Positions 37,938 through 59,276 of a stretch of 64,000 nucleotides of DNA are shown here, one piece after another; positions within the stretch are counted from its first letter, which is position 1; every line of letters begins with the position of its first letter. The translations under genes and the position numbers were made by a program. The notes beneath the pieces are model-generated. The model was given only the letters and a program-made list of their open reading frames with translations, made no database searches and had not been told where the DNA came from. Location of the stretch: assembly GCF_902459465.1 (NCBI RefSeq), contig NC_047070.1, forward strand, positions 16,306,001 to 16,370,000, in the 5' to 3' direction. This DNA comes from Asterias rubens. Lineage: Eukaryota.

Positions 37938-40900
37938 TTGCCCAAAAGCCAGAGGCAGTTCAACACTCATACTTTAGCAGCAGGTACTGCACGATGTTAA
38001 TAGATGTTAAATTTGCACCAGAGTTAGCAAATATTACATGTATAGGGTTTTACCCTTGCGCCAATGTGTTAGGCACTGTATACAAAGTACTTTCCTCGAG
38101 GCCTGTGAAAAAAGAACACACCTTGTCATAGATGGTTGCAGTGTTATCAGATAATTTTTGGTGCTAGCCAAACTTCTGTTGGATTTTGATGGATTTGAGA
38201 CGGCCCTTTGTGTGATTACCTTAGGAGATAGGGTTAATACTTATTGCTTCTTGAAGCATATTTTTGGTGCTTATTAAGTGCCAGCAGTATATTATTGGTA
38301 ACTATGAGGACCTATGGATTGCTTTGTCTAGTCCCATTGTTGTGTGTATAGTGTGTCTCGTATATAAGCGCAACCTGGACCCAATTTCATAAAGCAAGTA
38401 AGTGTAAAAACTTGCTAAGCACAAGTATATTGCTTAGGAGAAATATGTTACCAACCAAGGTACCATATAGTTTAAATATGGTAACTTGCTTAGCAAGATA
38501 TTAGCAGAATTATAATTCATAGAGCTGCTTAACGGCCAATTTTGTGCTTACTGTACGATTTCCATGTCATACCGTATGTGACGGCTATGAAAATGAGTGA
38601 TATAACAATGCAGCCACATGATGAACGCTAAAGCTGGCCCCCTAGTTGACTTCAGCACTGCAGCAATTTTTCTACTAAACATGTAAATAGCACCAATACT
38701 CGCTTACTGTTGAGCAACGCTATGAAATTGGTTCCTGGGGTTTGAAAATGCTTTCAAGTTTGGAAGTTATGAAACTTTGATGTTAAATGTTGCACTTTGT
38801 TCTTGTCACATATATTTTTATGTCAGTGTCTATATTTCAAACATTTGTGAAACTTATAACACTGGTATTGCATATACAGGTATATTTACATGTACATGTA
38901 CTTGTGTTTACGTGGAGGTAGACATTTCCACCTCCATTGTTATTAACAACTCAGACAGATTCTGGTGGCTGTTGAGTTCCGATTGATCACAATTTCCACT
39001 TATCAGGTTTTATGAAAGGGTTCAAGGGCACCATTTGTGATGGAATGGCTAAACAGATATTATTGTTTGCATTGGTGACAAAGAACCAATGTGTATTCAG
39101 CACTGTATACTCAGTACTTTCCAGAGTTTTGTGAAAACCAATGTAATGGTTGTTTTGAATGGTATGTACATTCCTGTAGATACACACGCTAATCATTCCT
39201 TGAACTTTTGCATGCACAATTTGTGTTCAAGGCTTGCCACCCATGCACCCAATCCAATCTTTTAAAAACTTACATTGTAAATGTACTCTTGGTCCTGATT
39301 TGGTTGCCATTGCAATTATTAAACAAACCAGAATATAAATTGCTCAGGTCAATAGGACCCCAAGCCCGGGTTAATTCTGACCCAGGTTTTCTTTAGAGCG
39401 TAACCAAACAGAATGAATTAATCGATAGTTAGAAGAAACCAATCCTTGCCTGGGCAATTGCTCGACACTAACACTTAGTTCTTTGACACTTAAAGGCTGA
39501 AGTAAAGAACACTAAAAGTTTATCAATGAAGTGAAAGTGTTAATGAATTTCAGCTGCTGCGTCAAAAAACATACTCTGCCTTAACAACTTACACTGCCCC
39601 ATGCATCTCAAGGCCTATGTATGCCTTATTTTAGATGCTTTAATCTAAAGTAAATAATTGAAAGACCAAATAAACTGCCTGTAGTCTTTGATGATAGGAA
39701 GAAGTAACTTTCCCAGTTGCATATCTTAATTTAAGTATGTAGTGAAACAAATTGTATGTACATTTTCAACTAAATAAGTTAAGGTGCTAAGCAAGTCACA
39801 CTTTTTTAACAGTGATATTCAACTTTGACCTCTGTGTCATGCCTTATTTTAGAAAGCAAATAGAATTTCTAAGCAAAACTACAACAAAAATAAGTCTGCT
39901 TTACCCCAAAAAGGTTGCCAGCAGAAACATGATGTCACATGAAGTGTACTGTTTGTGACCAAGTCTCTGCTTTAAAATAAATTTTACCATAAATATGTTC
40001 TGATTTAAAGTTGCATAGACAACCTGTTCTGCAGAAAATTCTGCTTAGCCGGAATGAGCAGAGAAGCAGAACAAAAATACATTACATGGTATCAGTCCTG
40101 GTAAACTGTTTCTATTAAGTACAATTTTTATCTGCTAAGCAGTTTTGTGTGCTTAATGGCTTTTCTAAACGGAAATGTTGCAGCCGTCATATGATATACA
40201 GGAATGGGATGCCCTTCAATGTCCTATGCCAAAGTTGGACAAAACTGTACATAAACAACATATAAAACAAGATGATTTTGAGTTAAAGAGAATTGTGTGT
40301 TATAAGATCAACAAAAGAAAAATCTATTGTATTTATACATAAATTGTATGTTTATATATGGCCAGTATGGATTGTAAATTTTGATTTTGAAGTACTTAAT
40401 ATTATTAGATTTAATATATCGAAACATGTCATGTGCAGCCAGTTGTTTAACTGCAACGAATTAAATATTGTGAAACAATTTAAACATAACATCTCTGTGC
40501 ATTTTTTTTATTAAAATTGTGTGAACCTAGTATATACAGGGTGATACCATTATATTAGCTATAGAAACTAAGCTTACACGAACGGCAAGTATTTAACTTG
40601 TTTTAAATATTGACCAAACACCATCCTATTTAAAGGCGCTGGACACCGTTGGTAATTGTCAAACACCCAGTCTTCTCACTTGCTGTATCTCAACATATGC
40701 ATTAAATAATAGAAATTTGAACTCAATTGGTCATTTTATTTCTTAAAAACTACGTTACTTCAGAGGGAGCCGTTTCTCACAATGTGGCTGTACTACCAAC
40801 AGCTCCTCATTGCTCGTTATCAATGTTATTTATTTTAATTTCTTAAATATTTATTTTGATAAGCAGCAGAAAAATATTAGTAATACAAAATAACGAATAA

Positions 40901-41741
40901 TAAAATATAAATATAAAATAGACTTCTGTTTGTTTTTTTTTTGTTTTTTTTTACAATGGAATGTAATTTCGTGGGGAGTACAGTTCACATGAAACTGTTT
41001 TGGCGCAAATGCACCCGAATAACTCTTCTTAAATGGCAAAACCAAGTTCTACTGGGCCTAATTTCATGGAGTTGCTTTAGCAGAAATTAACGCTTACCAC
41101 AAGTTCTGTTAAGTGCATTTTAGCAGGAAACCAGTCACCAATTGCGTATGAGAAATTGTACTTCGATTGGCAACCTTATTCTGGTAATCAACAGTTTGTT
41201 GTGCTTAGCTAGTTTTTGTGCTCAAGGCACCCATAACATTGGGCCCTGCTGAAATTTGGAAAATACTGCCAGACTTTGGTAGCAAAAGTTGAGTGGGGCA
41301 CCAGCAGCCACAGCAACGCAAACTTAAAGTTACTTTGGCTGGTAACCATTTTCTGCTAAGCAACACTATTTCATGATTAGCAAGTTTTTGTGCTTACATG
41401 CTTTATGAAATTGAGTCCATGGCACAATTTCAAAAAGCTGCAGCATGCATGCGTCAGAATTCGGCCGACGGTAAGCATAGCCTTCATGAAGCTGCTTAAT
41501 CATAAAAAGAGATAAGCACAACAAATTATGCTTACCAGCCAAACTACCATGTCACATGTACACTTTGTGATTGCTATCTTGCTCATTTCTGCTAAATAGT
41601 CAATTGCTTAGCAATACATTCTGTTTAAGCTCTCGAGTGATATGGTGGCTTGCCAACCACATTAACTTGTTCAATAAGTCAATGACGTTTACGGCCCAGC
41701 TGTTTTTGGTTTTGGTTGGCCGTCAACCTTGTTCAATAAAG

Positions 41742-43946
41742 TCAATGATGTTTTGGGACCAGTTTGTTCGGTTCTTCACACGTTGTCGATTGATCCATGA
41801 ACTCTGCCCACGTTTCCTTCATGAAGTCAGTCCTCTTGAAGCCATGCAGGTTGAAAGCCTTCCGTAGGAAACAGGCATCCCTTCGGCTTCCAGTGGTGAT
41901 GAAATACTTGGACGAGGCTGCGTTCAGGTTGATCTTGGTTTTTGATCGGAACGCCAGGATACCCGCGTAAGCATCGTCAATGGGGATGAGTTTGGTGCTA
42001 CGAGTCATGTCGTACATTCCCTTCACTGCTGCAGAAGACATGATGTAACCACCTCCGGAGAAGTACGGTAGGAAGTACTTAAACGGGTACTGCGACCTGA
42101 GTACCTGGTATTTGGACTTCTCTCTTACAACAGGACTTAGACCCATCATATGACCGAGGAAGAGGTTCTGTGATTGGGTGCGGGGAAGGGATTGAAGATG
42201 GCTCGTGATTCGCTCAAAGTTGACCAGCATGTCGTCGTCTCCCTTGTAGATGAAAGACGCTTGCTTGCAATTGGTGGAGACCCACCTCAACCCAAGGATG
42301 ACTTTGAGAGTGAGGTTGTGAAACGATTCCAGGAAATCGGCTTGGATGATGTCGCTGTTTTGGCGCGCTTCCTCGTCTATAGCATCCTGCATACCAGTGG
42401 TCATACCACGTGATTTCCCAAGGATGAAAAGAGTCTTAGAGTTCGTATTGGTCATGTAGTCTGGTGCCGCCCACGTTTTTCGGATCGCTGCTCTCAGTTC
42501 AAAGTGCTCGGGCATGGAGCTCACGAGAGCGAGAAGGTAGGGTGCCTGTTTTGTCTTTGGATTCTTCCAGCATGTTTTCTTCGGGTGGTGGATCAGCTTG
42601 AGTACCTTACTGAAGTACGCATTGTTGTCCATCTTACCCGTCCAATGCTCAATATCCGTAACGTTAGGTATAGGATTAGAGCAGACCACCTCTAAACTGT
42701 GGTTCCTCCACACTGATCTCATGAGCTCCTCAGTACCGAAACCACCCAGCGTAATGGTGCCTTTAAGATCGCAGTAATCCGCATCGCCACCAAGCTTCAA
42801 AAAGGAATCCTTGTACTTAGGCCACACTTTCAGATTAAGTGCGATCATCCCAAGATACACGTCTCCGATGTTAAATCCCATCGTCTCCACAGCCATTGAC
42901 ATACTCTTTAAGTACGCATCTTGAATAAACTGCGTAGAGACAACAAATCCAGCCCCACCGACGCAGTATTTCGGGTACGCCTCTGGTTTGTAAGTTTTCA
43001 AATCCACGTAATCTTTATATTTGGCATCTCGCTGCGGCTTACCATCCTTCCGAACTCGGCCTAAATAAAGACTTGTCGGATTGTTCAACGCTTTCAAATA
43101 TTTAATCATGTTCTCTTGATCTACAAAGAGATTTTCGGGACCAATGAAGACATATTTCACGAGAGGGCAGTGTGTTAACACATATTTAAACGTAGCTAGA
43201 ATTCTCAACGTTGAGGGGGTTGAGAGTTTCTTAGGCTCGATCACACTAGTTCCAATGACATCGCCCTTATTGTCACATTCTTCGATGACCTTTTTTTCCA
43301 AAGAGTCTTCAATTGCCTTCGACGTGGGATGTCCAACCATGAACAGAGTCTGTACGTTTTTCCCGTCCACGGAGCGCTCTGAACCCCACGTCTCGCGTAT
43401 CGCCTCTCGCTGATTCGCATTCAATGGTTCAGAATTGACCACTGTTAATAAATATAAGCCTTCCCCGCCATTTTGACACATTTTTGCACCAGAAGGCGTC
43501 CAAAACTTTAATTTTTCATGCAACCACTTTCCCTTTAACTTCTTCAGTTTCGTCTCAAACTCTAAAACTTTCCTCGCAGACAGGGACAGCTTTTCTGTTT
43601 TAACTTCGTCTTTTTTAACTTCGTCTTTTTTAACTTCGTCTTTTTTAACTTCGTCTTTTTTAACGTTCAAATCTGCATCTTTCCCGTGAGAGTCTCCGTG
43701 ACCTTTATCCATGAGGTCGTTGAGCGCGTGTTCGCCATCTTTACCCGCGTCATTGACAGAATCCGGCTCTTGTTCTTTGACATTTCGGTGTAGTACTTCA
43801 GACCTACTGATTGGTGGGTCGTAAGGTATCTGTACGTTACCGGCGACAAGTCGTTCGTCCAGATAGACTAAAGAAAGTAATACTCTGCATGCCCCAATAA
43901 GCAAAATGACAGTCAGAACTGCGCCCGGTGCATTAGCGGGCGCCAT
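41742..43946 (-). CDS. Intronless type II membrane GT31-family (B3GALT/B3GNT-like) glycosyltransferase with two tandem Galactosyl_T domains, 734 aa
   Basis: Single ORF; N-terminal hydrophobic anchor (aa 9-28), stem with (KKDEV)4, domain 1 about aa 157-423 (REAIRETWG, YPKYCVGGAGFVVS, GDVYLG), domain 2 about aa 459-723 (RAAIRKTW, DFLESFHNLTLK, KGDDDMLVN, PYFSGGGYIMS, IDDAYAG). Family recognisable, exact orthologue not. Confidence 0.9.
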   Translation of the reverse strand: MAPANAPGAVLTVILLIGACRVLLSLVYLDERLVAGNVQIPYDPPISRSEVLHRNVKEQEPDSVNDAGKDGEHALNDLMDKGHGDSHGKDADLNVKKDEVKKDEVKKDEVKKDEVKTEKLSLSARKVLEFETKLKKLKGKWLHEKLKFWTPSGAKMCQNGGEGLYLLTVVNSEPLNANQREAIRETWGSERSVDGKNVQTLFMVGHPTSKAIEDSLEKKVIEECDNKGDVIGTSVIEPKKLSTPSTLRILATFKYVLTHCPLVKYVFIGPENLFVDQENMIKYLKALNNPTSLYLGRVRKDGKPQRDAKYKDYVDLKTYKPEAYPKYCVGGAGFVVSTQFIQDAYLKSMSMAVETMGFNIGDVYLGMIALNLKVWPKYKDSFLKLGGDADYCDLKGTITLGGFGTEELMRSVWRNHSLEVVCSNPIPNVTDIEHWTGKMDNNAYFSKVLKLIHHPKKTCWKNPKTKQAPYLLALVSSMPEHFELRAAIRKTWAAPDYMTNTNSKTLFILGKSRGMTTGMQDAIDEEARQNSDIIQADFLESFHNLTLKVILGLRWVSTNCKQASFIYKGDDDMLVNFERITSHLQSLPRTQSQNLFLGHMMGLSPVVREKSKYQVLRSQYPFKYFLPYFSGGGYIMSSAAVKGMYDMTRSTKLIPIDDAYAGILAFRSKTKINLNAASSKYFITTGSRRDACFLRKAFNLHGFKRTDFMKETWAEFMDQSTTCEEPNKLVPKHH

Positions 43947-43990: not shown

Positions 43991-44891
43991 TATGGTGAGG
44001 AGCGACTTCTGTTCGTGTCTTGGCCTCACGGTGTTTGTGTATGCATCACCAAACACTGGAGACAGCAGTCTAGAGTTCCTAATCCTAATGCAAGGAGTCG
44101 CGATACTATATCCTAAGGGAGAAATAAGACAATTAAAATAATTTATTTAGAGGTAAAAACAAATCGTTTTTGGGGTAGAGAAAAAAAAGATGCCCTCAGT
44201 ATGCATTATTTTAAGTCTCGAGGACCAAGGCACCAACATTGGTACGGCAGAGCTGTTTCACGGCTGTGCCTCTCTTCTTTTCTTGGATTCGGACGTTTGC
44301 AGTCACTACCTAAAGGGCCGTGTCACTGCTTGTCACACCACACGAGACAGCTTTCTTTATAGAACAATCGTTACCAGGATATTCAACACAAGTACATATT
44401 TAAAAGAACTCGCAACCGATATATAAATACTGTTTATATTTACCAACTGGTGCGAGGATTGCCTGATTTCAATGAAAATATTATAAAAGCCTGTTTTGAT
44501 GACTATTGCATACGTTTTGTTTGGTTCTGTGCAAAACTTGTCAGTGATATGTATTTTTTTCAGTATAGTGAAGGTTGCCTACTTTTGTCAAGGTTGGCAA
44601 AATTGGTGGCTGTCACGAGATATAGAAATGTAGTAAAAACCAATACTGACATTTTTCAAAACCACGACCCGAAACTTACATTTGTAGACAATCAAAGGCA
44701 TATTTCATGACATAATTGCATTTTTTATATGTAGGCTTAAATACAAACAAAAGAGTTAAATAATTACTCGATCATTCCATGCCCCCAAATTTGTTCTGTT
44801 AATGGCAAAGATATGGGAAAATACGGCACGGCCAACCGGGAAACGGTGAAGTTGGCCTTTCCTAACATGTGAATATGAGGACCTAAGTTAA

Positions 44892-44920
44892 TGTTGTTGT
44901 TGTTGTTGTTGTTGTTGTTT
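44892..44920. repeat. (GTT)n microsatellite
   Basis: Direct reading. Confidence 0.9.
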
Positions 44921-46869
44921 TTCAACATTTGGTAGTGAATAATATTACAACACGTTCAGTCTTATGGTCGGCAGAAAGGCCTGGGGGCGGGGGCGGATCC
45001 AACTCATAGTATGGATATAGATGCATTGTAGACTAGCCAAGTTGTCATTCAAGAATTTCTCAAACCCATGGAACCAAAGGAACTGGGGCTCTATTGGTGC
45101 CGAAAAAGGCACCCCAAGTTGGGATATCCTACCATATACTGAAGATCATGATGGCACTACACACTATATAGTCCAATACAATACAACCACCACCACATGG
45201 AAATAAATAAACCATTGAACAAACAACCTTTACATACCTCTGTTGTTAGCTTTTCGAAGGAGGGACTGTTTTACACCAACTCAGTCGACAATTTACCGTT
45301 CTCAACTAACTAGATCTGTAATACTCTTGCGGGTTTGAGTCTACCTCCATGGTTCTTAACTGGAGTTTCAGCCACGTTGGATATCTTTAATCACCATTTG
45401 GACGTATAGAAATAGAATGAATGGGCACAGTTGAGCGAACCCACAATCATAATAACAATGTTTGTATAGGTAACAACACGGCACACCTTGCATTCACAGT
45501 GCGGTAATCCATTGTCCCCCCTCATACATATTCATAAACTTCATACATATTCATGAGAAAGCTAAGGTCACCTTTTCATTGCTCCATGGTTTGATTAATT
45601 TGATTTTTGAATATAGAACCTATGATCACAGAACAAGGCTATGATTAAGACCTTTGACCGGATTGGCCTGGGTGGGAGTGGTGATGTGGGGGGGGGGGGG
45701 GGGGGTGCAAGGTTGGAGTGTGGGGAAGGAGGGGGGGGGGGGGTCTGTAAAAAGTAGATCAAGGACAATTCAATATGGATATACACGTTGTTATTGTGAT
45801 TCTTGCCAAATCTAGTATAGCCCACTACTTTTTAATGATGCTATTTGCAAACAAAGATGGTCTTCACAAAAAAACCAAGTTCATATATACAACGGAGCTA
45901 TAAATTATGATTTGCATAAAAATATAGGCGACAAACTTTAACGATAATTAGCCATGTTATATTTCTGTTGGCGGCTACAAAAATAAGACATATAGTGCCA
46001 GAGAAAAAAAATGAAAAACCTTCGCTGTACATACAAATTTGTTACAGCCACAAATTAATCACAACGAACTCTTTGGCTGTGACTTAAATATCATGGCTTT
46101 AGTATTTCTTATAAAAATCACTTCACAATCTTACAACAGGATTAAGACAAGGTCTTGATTAAGATTTACTCACTTCGTTGTGGCTCCTCACTAGTCCTTG
46201 TTGTTCCCAAGTCCAGTACATACGCTATTTCTACCTCCATGGCTGTATGGTGACCGGGCCTTATCACACATTATAGACCTCTACTCTGGAATAAACTACC
46301 CGATTATGTCTTGAACGGTGCTTCTGGAAACGTTCAAAACAGAACGGAAGACACTACTCTTTAGTAAAGCACGTTGTGTGTATTTTTCAGCAATGTTTTT
46401 TTTTTTTTTGCATCTTTGTAAATCTTTATTTGATTTTGATGTAGTGCCATTAATGTGCGCTTTATAAATCCATTATTATTATAGTCAGGAAATGTTAGGC
46501 CTATTTGACACCGCTTTGAGATGTTGGTTAAAAGGCTTATATCCGTTCGCTTAATAAACTACGCCAACATTTGCACTCTTAACGGTGTCTTCTTAACTCT
46601 CTCCCGCCAAACGTCACGGTGGACATTCATTTGCCTTAGAAGAGTCATGAATTAATGAACATAATAATAACGGCACACACCATGACCCTATTTCGTAAAG
46701 CTGTTTATAAGCAGAAAATATTGCTTAACTGTTTTGTTTTTGCTTAATGAAAATTAACAGAATACCAGTTACAAATTGTACACGCGGCATAGTAGTTTGG
46801 CTGGTAACTTTATTCTGGTAAGCATTATTTTGTTGGGCGATGGTTCATCATCTTGCCGTTCCCCCCCCC

Positions 46870-52490: not shown

Positions 52491-52759
52491 GAGTCATACT
52501 TGTATATTTGTGTTAGCATGCAATCAGCGTAAATGATGAAGTCAAGGTTTTTAGGTTTAGAAATCCTCAATGCGTACAAAGCTCATCGCGAACGAGTCTG
52601 AGCTCGGCTCGGCTAATTGAAAGTGTCAAGGGTGTTGAACTGAATGAGAAACACACCATGGACGATAGCATGCACTCATTAGTAACTATGAATTATTGAA
52701 TCCTGGTAGATTAATCTTCCATCAGTACGAACATTCTAAGATCACCCAAAATAGTCGGT

Positions 52760-53484
52760 GACAAGGAAGTTAAAGATAGCAATGGTAAACGGTGAACTGT
52801 GTACATACTGGTCCATAGATACACACAATTTGACAAGGAAGTTAAAGCTAGCAATGGTAAACGGTGAACTGTGTACATACTGGTCCATAGATACACACAA
52901 TTTGACAAGGAAGTTAAAGCTAGCAATGGTAAACGGTCAACTGTGTACATACTGGTCCATAGATACACACAATTTGACAAGGAAGTTAAAGCTAGCAATG
53001 GTAAACGGTCAACTGTGTACATACTGGTCCATAGATACACACAATTTGACAAGGAAGTTAAAGCTAGCAATGGTAAACGGTGAACTGTGTACATACTGGT
53101 CCATAGATACACACAATTTGACAAGGAAGTTAAAGCTAGCAATGGTAAACGGTGAACTGTGTACATACTGGTCCATAGATACACACAATTTGACAAGGAA
53201 GTTAAAGCTAGCAATGGTAAACGGTGAACTGTGTACATACTGGTCCATAGATACACACAATTTGACAAGGAAGTTAAAGCTAGCAATGGTAAACGGTCAA
53301 CTGTGTACATACTGGTCCATAGATACACACAATTTGACAAGGAAGTTAAAGCTAGCAATGGTAAACGGTCAACTGTGTACATACTGGTCCATAGATACAC
53401 ACAATTTGACAAGGAAGTTAAAGCTAGCAATGGTAAACGGTGAACTGTGTACATACTGGTCCATAGATACACACAATTTGACAA
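52760..53484. repeat. 72-bp minisatellite, 10 copies, in actin intron 1
   Basis: Unit GACAAGGAAGTTAAAGCTAGCAATGGTAAACGGT(G/C)AACTGTGTACATACTGGTCCATAGATACACACAATTT starting 52760, 52832 ... 53408, then GACAA. Confidence 0.97.

Positions 53485-54855: not shown

Positions 54856-59276
<4,421 letters not shown>

Follow-up and report, generated by a model that had tools for sequence, protein, structure and literature searches.

A tandem GT31 glycosyltransferase of the starfish Asterias rubens that probably joins a catalytic domain to a conserved, degenerate partner domain

A gene on the minus strand of the Asterias rubens genome encodes, in one polypeptide, two glycosyltransferase family 31 (GT31) domains in tandem. 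It lies in a stretch of 64,000 nucleotides (NCBI RefSeq assembly GCF_902459465.1, contig NC_047070.1, positions 16,306,001 to 16,370,000 of the forward strand), which we call the window and in whose coordinates positions are given below. The explanation we favor, with a probability of about 0.62, is that the C-terminal domain (domain 2) is the catalyst and the N-terminal domain (domain 1) a conserved, non-catalytic partner in cis. Domain 1 has lost its metal ligands yet remains under strong selection, and it is therefore most likely a non-catalytic partner. An initial annotation, made from the sequence alone, had proposed a catalytically dead helper domain; the architecture and the motif loss that it described both stand, while the inactivity of domain 1 and its helper role are what these features suggest. 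The coding sequence and the parts of the protein are as follows.

41742..43946, minus strand: complete coding sequence, single exon, 734 residues plus stop (open reading frame [ORF] list; in-frame stops upstream of the ATG)
43860..43931, minus strand: N-terminal hydrophobic helix, residues 6-29, a predicted type II signal anchor (AlphaFold2 helix and hydrophobic sequence)
43594..43664, minus strand: 15-nt tandem repeat, 4.7 copies with 98% matches, encoding KKDEV four times in the stem (Tandem Repeats Finder)
42687..43469, minus strand: domain 1, residues 160-420, a full GT-A/GT31 fold with a degenerate donor and metal site (PF01762 at 84 bits, AlphaFold2, structural matches)
42555..42686, minus strand: inter-domain linker, residues 421-464, with invariant C422 and C459 and two short helices (alignment and AlphaFold2)
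41781..42554, minus strand: domain 2, residues 465-722, an intact GT31 catalytic domain (PF01762 at 147 bits, phmmer, Foldseek)

The reading of this ORF as two GT31 domains is borne out by two matches to PF01762 (Galactosyl_T), whose gathering score is 23: one at residues 178-375 (84 bits, E = 1e-23) and one at residues 485-669 (147 bits). The Fringe profile PF02434 reaches only 16 to 20 bits on the same protein. Aligned with each other, the two halves are 25% identical (E = 9e-25). The AlphaFold2 model, for which 25 sequences were aligned, has a mean predicted local distance difference test score (pLDDT) of 79 and a full-chain predicted template modeling score (pTM) of 0.66, despite some 100 disordered residues; pLDDT is mostly 80 to 96 in both GT31 domains and falls below 50 in a disordered stem at residues 28-117. 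Searched with Foldseek against the PDB, the model finds human B3GNT2 and B3GalT5 as its top matches (E = 1e-21 to 1e-23), and against the Swiss-Prot AlphaFold models residues 126-421 and 424-725 each match a whole single-domain β3-glycosyltransferase. For domain 1 these matches include B3GALT9 (residues 126-421) and B3GNT5 (residues 122-417); because it matches a whole single-domain enzyme, domain 1 has a complete GT-A fold, including the C-terminal hypervariable region (HV3). The linker resembles the segment that precedes domain 1, and its maximum-likelihood (ML) codon omega is 0.05. The anchor helix, the disordered stem, and the folded domains that follow it are the features of the Golgi type II layout; a type II membrane topology is thus predicted from the model, and the protein probably resides in the Golgi.

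The asymmetry between the domains appears at the active site. In B3GNT2 the uracil is contacted by D215 and K223, D245 points toward the donor sugar, the ribose is bound by D246, the metal has D247 and H376 as its ligands, and the catalytic base is D333 (PMC7948508). We mapped domain 2 onto B3GNT2 chain 8sz3_A (full-length numbering) and took the domain 1 equivalents from the alignment of the two domains, with the following result.

Uracil contact: D215 in B3GNT2; E540 in domain 2; E237 in domain 1
Uracil contact: K223 in B3GNT2; K548 in domain 2; R248 in domain 1
Donor sugar: D245 in B3GNT2; D570 in domain 2; P270 in domain 1
Ribose: D246 in B3GNT2; D571 in domain 2; E271 in domain 1
Metal: D247 in B3GNT2; D572 in domain 2; N272 in domain 1
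Catalytic base: D333 in B3GNT2; D658 in domain 2; D362 in domain 1
Metal: H376 in B3GNT2; H701 in domain 2; G401 in domain 1

Domain 2 thus has the DxD, xED, and C-terminal His (C-His) features of an active GT31 enzyme, and domain 1 fails at DxD and C-His. Domain 1 is without both metal ligands and the donor-sugar contact while it retains the base Asp and the G-loop, which upholds the claim of the initial annotation that one domain has lost its metal site and the other is intact. The xED of domain 2 is D657-D658, aligned to B3GNT2 D332-D333; domain 1 has only the second Asp (G361-D362). Two sets of sequences are used for conservation: a family alignment of 25 sequences, and clade A, which comprises 13 sequences including this gene (the other 12 being its orthologues from four echinoderm classes). 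The residues concerned lie at the following positions.

42231..42239, minus strand: D570-D571-D572, the DxD of domain 2 (alignment to 8sz3_A)
41973..41975, minus strand: D658, predicted catalytic base of domain 2 (alignment to 8sz3_A)
41844..41846, minus strand: H701, metal-binding C-His of domain 2 (alignment to 8sz3_A)
43131..43139, minus strand: P270-E271-N272, domain 1 counterpart of DxD (gap-free alignment to domain 2, orthologue columns)
42861..42863, minus strand: D362, domain 1 counterpart of the xED base (invariant in 25 of 25 aligned family members)
42744..42746, minus strand: G401, domain 1 counterpart of C-His (Gly in 13 of 13 clade A sequences)

The motifs themselves stand where they had been placed from the letters alone: KGDDD at residues 568-572 (DDD at nt 42239-42231), IDDAY at 656-660, and FNLHG at 698-702 in domain 2, and FIGPE at 267-271 (GPE at nt 43142-43134), IGDVY at 360-364, and ITLGG at 398-402 in domain 1, which also has REAIRETWG (180-188) and YPKYCVGGAGF (324-334). 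Their proposed equivalence is likewise upheld by the alignment of the halves, in which GPE pairs with DDD (no gap), GD with DD, and G401 with H701. The four cysteine pairs said to be in register hold less uniformly: C260/C560 and C392/C692 align exactly, whereas C157/C459 needs a 3-residue indel and C422/C723 a 1-residue indel.

All seven donor, metal, and base residues of domain 2 are conserved in the 25 family members, six of them invariant and the seventh, D571, being Asp in 23 and Glu in 2. Domain 2 reads DDD/DD/H throughout clade A and in nearly all paralogues, with DED in two holothurian paralogues. The donor of this domain is less readily named. Its phmmer scores are 134 bits for B3GalT5 and 127 bits for B3GNT2, and B3GNT2 K149, which contacts the GlcNAc donor, is replaced by Ser476; the donor is therefore not transferable by homology, and from these scores and this residue the donor sugar of domain 2 is not assignable.

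When the full-length protein was used as the query, two-domain orthologues turned up among asteroids and echinoids and in one holothurian and one crinoid, and further two-domain paralogue clades came with them. The nearest protein match, from Asterias amurensis, is 97% identical, and the public annotation of family members gives them as "uncharacterized" or under generic β3-transferase names. An intact DxD or His is absent from domain 1 in 12 of 12 orthologues (starfish, sea cucumber, sea urchin, crinoid). Across clade A the counterpart of DxD reads PEN, PDN, PDD, NDE, HDE, or TDS, so that the first Asp is replaced by Pro, Asn, His, or Thr in 13 of 13 sequences; the C-His counterpart is Gly and the xED Asp is present in all 13. 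Whether GPE might be a private mutation, as the initial annotation had asked, can thus be answered in part: the loss of the first Asp is clade-wide, while the string GPE itself is specific to Asterias and close relatives. In the clade of this gene the uracil loop of domain 1 has also acquired a 3-residue insertion and lost its NLTLK motif. No His is invariant anywhere in domain 1 in the clade A alignment.

Domain 1 is nonetheless constrained. Between this gene and its A. amurensis orthologue, dN/dS is 0.12 in domain 1 and 0.155 in domain 2; between Patiria and Acanthaster it is 0.073 and 0.058. The domain 1 values, 0.07 to 0.12, are not near 1, the result that by the terms of the initial annotation would have refuted its proposal. 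Under the Nei-Gojobori (NG86) method dS is undefined for Asterias versus Patiria in three of four partitions, and these two closer pairs were relied on. ML codon omega over seven taxa is 0.063 in domain 1, 0.062 in domain 2, and 0.21 in the stem, values that are saturated (tree lengths of 14 to 22 substitutions per codon) and serve as a relative guide only. As judged from these ratios, domain 1 is kept under purifying selection. As a protein it evolves faster than domain 2: identity between classes is ~35% for domain 1 and ~55% for domain 2, and in clade A the invariant positions number 36 of 261 in domain 1 (G401 included) and 88 of 258 in domain 2. By this comparison domain 1 is clearly constrained, somewhat less than domain 2. 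The clade-invariant residues specific to domain 1 include R297, P325, C328, Y378, Y391, D393, and G401.

As to origin, an ML tree of 70 GT31 domains (support given as ultrafast bootstrap/SH-aLRT) recovers the echinoderm domain 1 sequences as one clade (96/90) and the domain 2 sequences as another (100/96), joined to each other at 94/90; the joined clades adjoin vertebrate B3GNT2/8-like enzymes (88/81). The branching within one of the two clades mirrors that within the other. This pattern agrees with a single internal duplication that preceded the crinoid split and with later duplications of whole genes.

The genome holds five two-domain genes and one domain-2-only derivative within about 50 kb; in each of the four other two-domain genes, 22 to 50 kb away, domain 1 is degenerate and domain 2 intact. 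Domain 1 is less degenerate in these paralogues than the PEN/G found here: its motif is DDH, the C-His counterpart is Arg, and NSTLK is intact in the uracil loop. The domain-2-only ORF encodes 406 residues (L006:1357-2577, on G000:C10), lies about 37 kb beyond the gene, and has its own N-terminal hydrophobic segment. Its domain is nearly identical to domain 2 of the neighboring two-domain gene L005 (branch lengths 0.0035 and 0.012), and by these branch lengths it is a very recent natural derivative. In two further two-domain neighbors, L002 and L003 (G000:C10:16392400-16398699), both domain 1 and domain 2 are almost identical (end branches 0 to 0.025), which fits a recent duplication or gene conversion.

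The packing of the two domains against each other was addressed by complex prediction with domain 1 and domain 2 as separate chains. The score was 0.51 against 0.22 for the best control, with a verdict of weak support. Of 78 solved complexes 51 reach the pass mark, as do 2 of 108 mismatched pairs, and scores of 0.60 or less comprise only 5 of the 78 solved complexes but all 4 passing mismatches (of 180). Contacts coincide between runs to 88% or more, and partner pLDDT is 81 or higher.

Taken together, the data are consistent with the following mechanism. Domain 2 would carry out a metal-dependent, inverting β1,3-transfer from a uridine diphosphate (UDP)-sugar and be closest to vertebrate B3GNT2/B3GNT8-type enzymes, the β1,3 linkage being what family resemblance suggests. 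Domain 1 would have arisen when the whole stem-helix and GT-A unit was duplicated internally, earlier than the divergence of the sampled echinoderm classes; it would then have lost its metal ligands and remodeled its uracil loop while staying under strong purifying selection. We infer from the altered residues that it is inactive. It would pack against domain 2, and its vestigial acceptor-side surface (the G-loop, the xED Asp, and the HV2/HV3 loops) would probably hold or present the acceptor, as the N-terminal domain of B3GLCT does. Within a helper role, acceptor holding would seem to be favored over a pure scaffold because the conserved parts of the vestigial site are the xED Asp, the G-loop glycines, and the KPxRD segment of HV2.

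Several observations weigh against this explanation. Domain 1 keeps D362 without exception, and with it the G-loop (GAG) and the RxxxRxTW motif; it still has the middle, ribose-contacting acid of DxD (E271); and 8 of the 13 clade A sequences carry Asp or Glu at the third position, that of a metal ligand. C-His is not needed by all GT-A enzymes (PMC13597200). The saturation of the codon omegas limits what they can say about constraint. The DDH/R motifs and intact NSTLK of the paralogues could reflect a metal-independent re-wiring of domain 1, the domain-2-only paralogue suggests that domain 2 may be able to exist alone, and the weakly supported interface between the domains may echo the solved B3GNT2 homodimer.

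One alternative we regard as possible if unlikely: domain 1 could be a mere dimer mimic or folding scaffold that replaces the B3GNT2 homodimer or a Cosmc-type chaperone and never touches the acceptor. The homodimer of B3GNT2 looks obligate (PMC7948508), domain 1 and domain 2 are predicted to pack, with the score above that of the best control, and the full-chain pTM is reached in the presence of the long disordered stem, all of which a scaffold would accommodate. Such a scaffold would not obviously need the invariant xED Asp and G-loop glycines, which line the acceptor side of the pocket, and the existence of the domain-2-only paralogue ORF also counts against it.

It is doubtful that domain 1 is itself an active, non-canonical glycosyltransferase, metal-independent or differently liganded, so that the protein would be bifunctional and add two sugars in succession, like the dual-domain polymerases of the LARGE or CHSY type. 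The full GT-A fold with HV3, the invariant D362, the retained G331, G333, and R180/R184, the kept middle acid, and the frequent acid at the third DxD position in clade A are what a working site might preserve, and purifying selection on domain 1 is as strong as on domain 2 by dN/dS and ML omega. In the paralogues, moreover, DDH...R places basic residues at both metal-ligand positions and so recalls the metal-independent Gcnt1 (PMC7948508). In the present gene, by contrast, the metal-ligand positions hold Asn and Gly, with no basic replacement; zero His residues are invariant in domain 1; the uracil loop bears its insertion and has lost NLTLK; the donor-positioning first Asp is Pro, Asn, His, or Thr across clade A; and far fewer positions are invariant than in domain 2 (36/261 versus 88/258). 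Judged by these motifs, non-canonical activity is more plausible for the DDH/R paralogues than for this gene.

A broader version of this idea strikes us as improbable: domain 1 would have been re-wired into a metal-independent or differently liganded second site, or into an allosteric site sensing UDP or uridine, and the tandem GT31 proteins of ambulacrarians, with up to seven domains, would be single-chain assembly lines for repeating or multi-step glycans. Hemichordate proteins with four to seven GT31 domains emerged from an exhaustive search with domain 1. In Ptychodera flava an uninterrupted ORF of 6372 nt (L019:1001-7372) encodes 2123 residues with seven GT31 domains, two of them intact (DDD/ED/H) and the rest degenerate at DxD and/or C-His; four-domain relatives occur in Ptychodera and Glandiceps and a seven-domain relative in Saccoglossus. 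These arrays form their own clade in the domain tree and have the ED form of xED, and would therefore have multiplied independently of the echinoderm tandems. Going by domain counts in predicted proteins, tandem GT31 arrays are not confined to echinoderms: two domains are predicted in the scallop Argopecten irradians (P0079/P0196), six in the centipede Strigamia maritima (P0056), and five in the dinoflagellate Polykrikos kofoidii (P0071). In the scallop protein the first domain is degenerate (NDN) and the second intact.

Finally, the notion that domain 1 is a functionless, decaying relic, or that assembly or annotation has fused two neighboring genes into the two-domain ORF, draws on the faster protein evolution of domain 1 (~35% versus ~55% identity between classes) and can be set aside as effectively refuted by selection (dN/dS of 0.07 to 0.12), by phylogenetic depth (the architecture is retained in four echinoderm classes, with a single uninterrupted ORF in all seven genome assemblies read), and by single RNA contigs that cover both domains.

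The closest precedent for a catalytic domain 2 with a non-catalytic partner in cis, by analogy, is B3GLCT, the human GT31 β1,3-glucosyltransferase, which the initial annotation does not name. In that enzyme a duplication of the C-terminal GT-A domain gave rise to the N-terminal one, which does not bind UDP or Mn2+ yet is indispensable for the acceptor to bind in the inter-domain cleft (PMC13597200). In both proteins one chain carries two GT31-derived GT-A domains related by internal duplication at ~25% inter-domain identity, with an N-terminal domain that lacks a working DxD and C-His and a C-terminal domain that is the catalyst. The differences are equally clear. B3GLCT is Fringe-like, whereas both starfish domains are PF01762 and group with B3GNT2/8-like enzymes, which points to an independent origin; the N-terminal domain of B3GLCT is truncated after α5 and is without HV3 and the xED base, whereas starfish domain 1 is full-length with HV3 and D362; and B3GLCT is an endoplasmic reticulum (ER) enzyme that acts on thrombospondin type 1 repeat (TSR) domains. 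On profile and tree evidence the starfish protein is not a B3GLCT orthologue. Foldseek gave no two-domain match to B3GLCT: each of the 30 top Swiss-Prot AlphaFold hits extends over just one domain, and no B3GLCT is among the top 50 PDB hits.

B3GNT2 and B3GalT5 remain the best sequence and structure matches of domain 2, which shares their donor, metal, and base residues and has the DD form of xED, as does B3GNT2. These enzymes are single-domain proteins of 310 to 400 residues that pair in trans, whereas the starfish partner is fused in cis and degenerate. Pseudo-enzyme partners are recurrent in GT31 biology (Cosmc, CHPF, B3GNT8): B3GNT2 is activated by its paralogue B3GNT8, and C1GALT1 requires the GT31-related partner Cosmc, an ER chaperone that does not remain with its client. 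CHSY-CHPF heterodimers are also known. As may hold within the starfish protein, a GT31-related protein with lost or reduced catalysis is needed by, or boosts, an active GT31 partner in the Cosmc/C1GALT1 and CHPF/CHSY pairs, which differ in being separate polypeptides rather than one chain. Compared with its own paralogue cluster, the gene belongs to a separate, more degenerate clade, with PEN/G and a remodeled uracil loop instead of DDH/R and NSTLK; the pseudo-GT31 helper reading would in this case extend to a clade that is, by its motifs, distinct from and more degenerate than the neighboring paralogues.

Searches for tandem or two-domain GT31 proteins, for a pseudo-glycosyltransferase with GT31, and for echinoderm or hemichordate GT31 enzymes found no literature on this family, only papers on CHSY/CHPF and B3GLCT. 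The first structure of a fused, inactive GT-A helper, that of B3GLCT, dates from 2026 and is called unusual there (PMC13597200). The echinoderm family would be an independent, phylum-wide second example, within the B3GNT/B3GALT branch, which predates the split of the sampled echinoderm classes, has persisted since, and has expanded into local gene clusters. The graded decay of domain 1 (DDH/R, NDE/G, PEN/G), together with the adjoining domain-2-only derivative, makes a comparative series suited to asking what a dead GT-A domain contributes, be it acceptor selection, stability, or processivity. The family also points to unexplored glycans of echinoderms and hemichordates; as for the echinoderm-specific glycan proposed in the initial annotation, nothing in the analysis links the enzyme to one. 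The practical value is moderate and lies in enzyme evolution and glycobiology rather than in a new kind of system.

The tandem GT31 gene is transcribed and spliced. The evidence consists of Logan contigs of public runs, from which level, tissue, and strand are not readable. Individual contigs cover 41539-43627 and so carry both GT31 domains on one contig. A joint between 44111 and 45237 is common to three public runs from three studies, and contig depth inside 44113-45237 is zero; transcripts are therefore spliced, with an intron in the 5' untranslated region (UTR). The two features outside the coding sequence are as follows.

45238..45384, minus strand: non-coding 5' exon, observed part (spliced RNA contigs of runs X1, X7, and X10 reaching 45329-45384)
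44113..45237, minus strand: 5'-UTR intron of 1125 nt, GT..AG (RNA contig joints and splice-site letters)

The coding sequence is one uninterrupted exon in all eight orthologues for which a called gene span was returned, and the uninterrupted two-domain ORF was read in seven of seven genome assemblies (the window, Asterias amurensis, Patiria, Acanthaster, Holothuria, Diadema, and Anneissia). RNA contigs break at the 15-nt repeat that encodes KKDEV. The A. amurensis orthologue has three copies of KKDEV against four here; stem length is therefore polymorphic between close species.

Some further observations concern the 3' side of the gene. Runs X1 and X10, but not X2 and X7, have contigs with a C>T difference at 41695. 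This site lies 47 nt past the stop codon, and the difference is probably allelic. At 40600-40796 and 41191-41584, the summed contig depth is very high in four of four runs, from thousands up to hundreds of thousands, and short joints and loose ends abound; these stretches probably represent dispersed repeats within or next to the 3' UTR.

Elsewhere in the window, a 72-bp minisatellite at 52759-53484 (10.1 copies, 99% identity) gives rise to spurious long ORFs on both strands; the ORFs at 52.7 to 53.5 kb, whose Pfam hits had zero matched stretches, were rejected as genes. Runs of N occupy 1133-1295 (163 letters) and 55718-56217 (500 letters), and the ORFs at 55.6 to 56.5 kb, likewise rejected as genes, are created by the 500-letter run.

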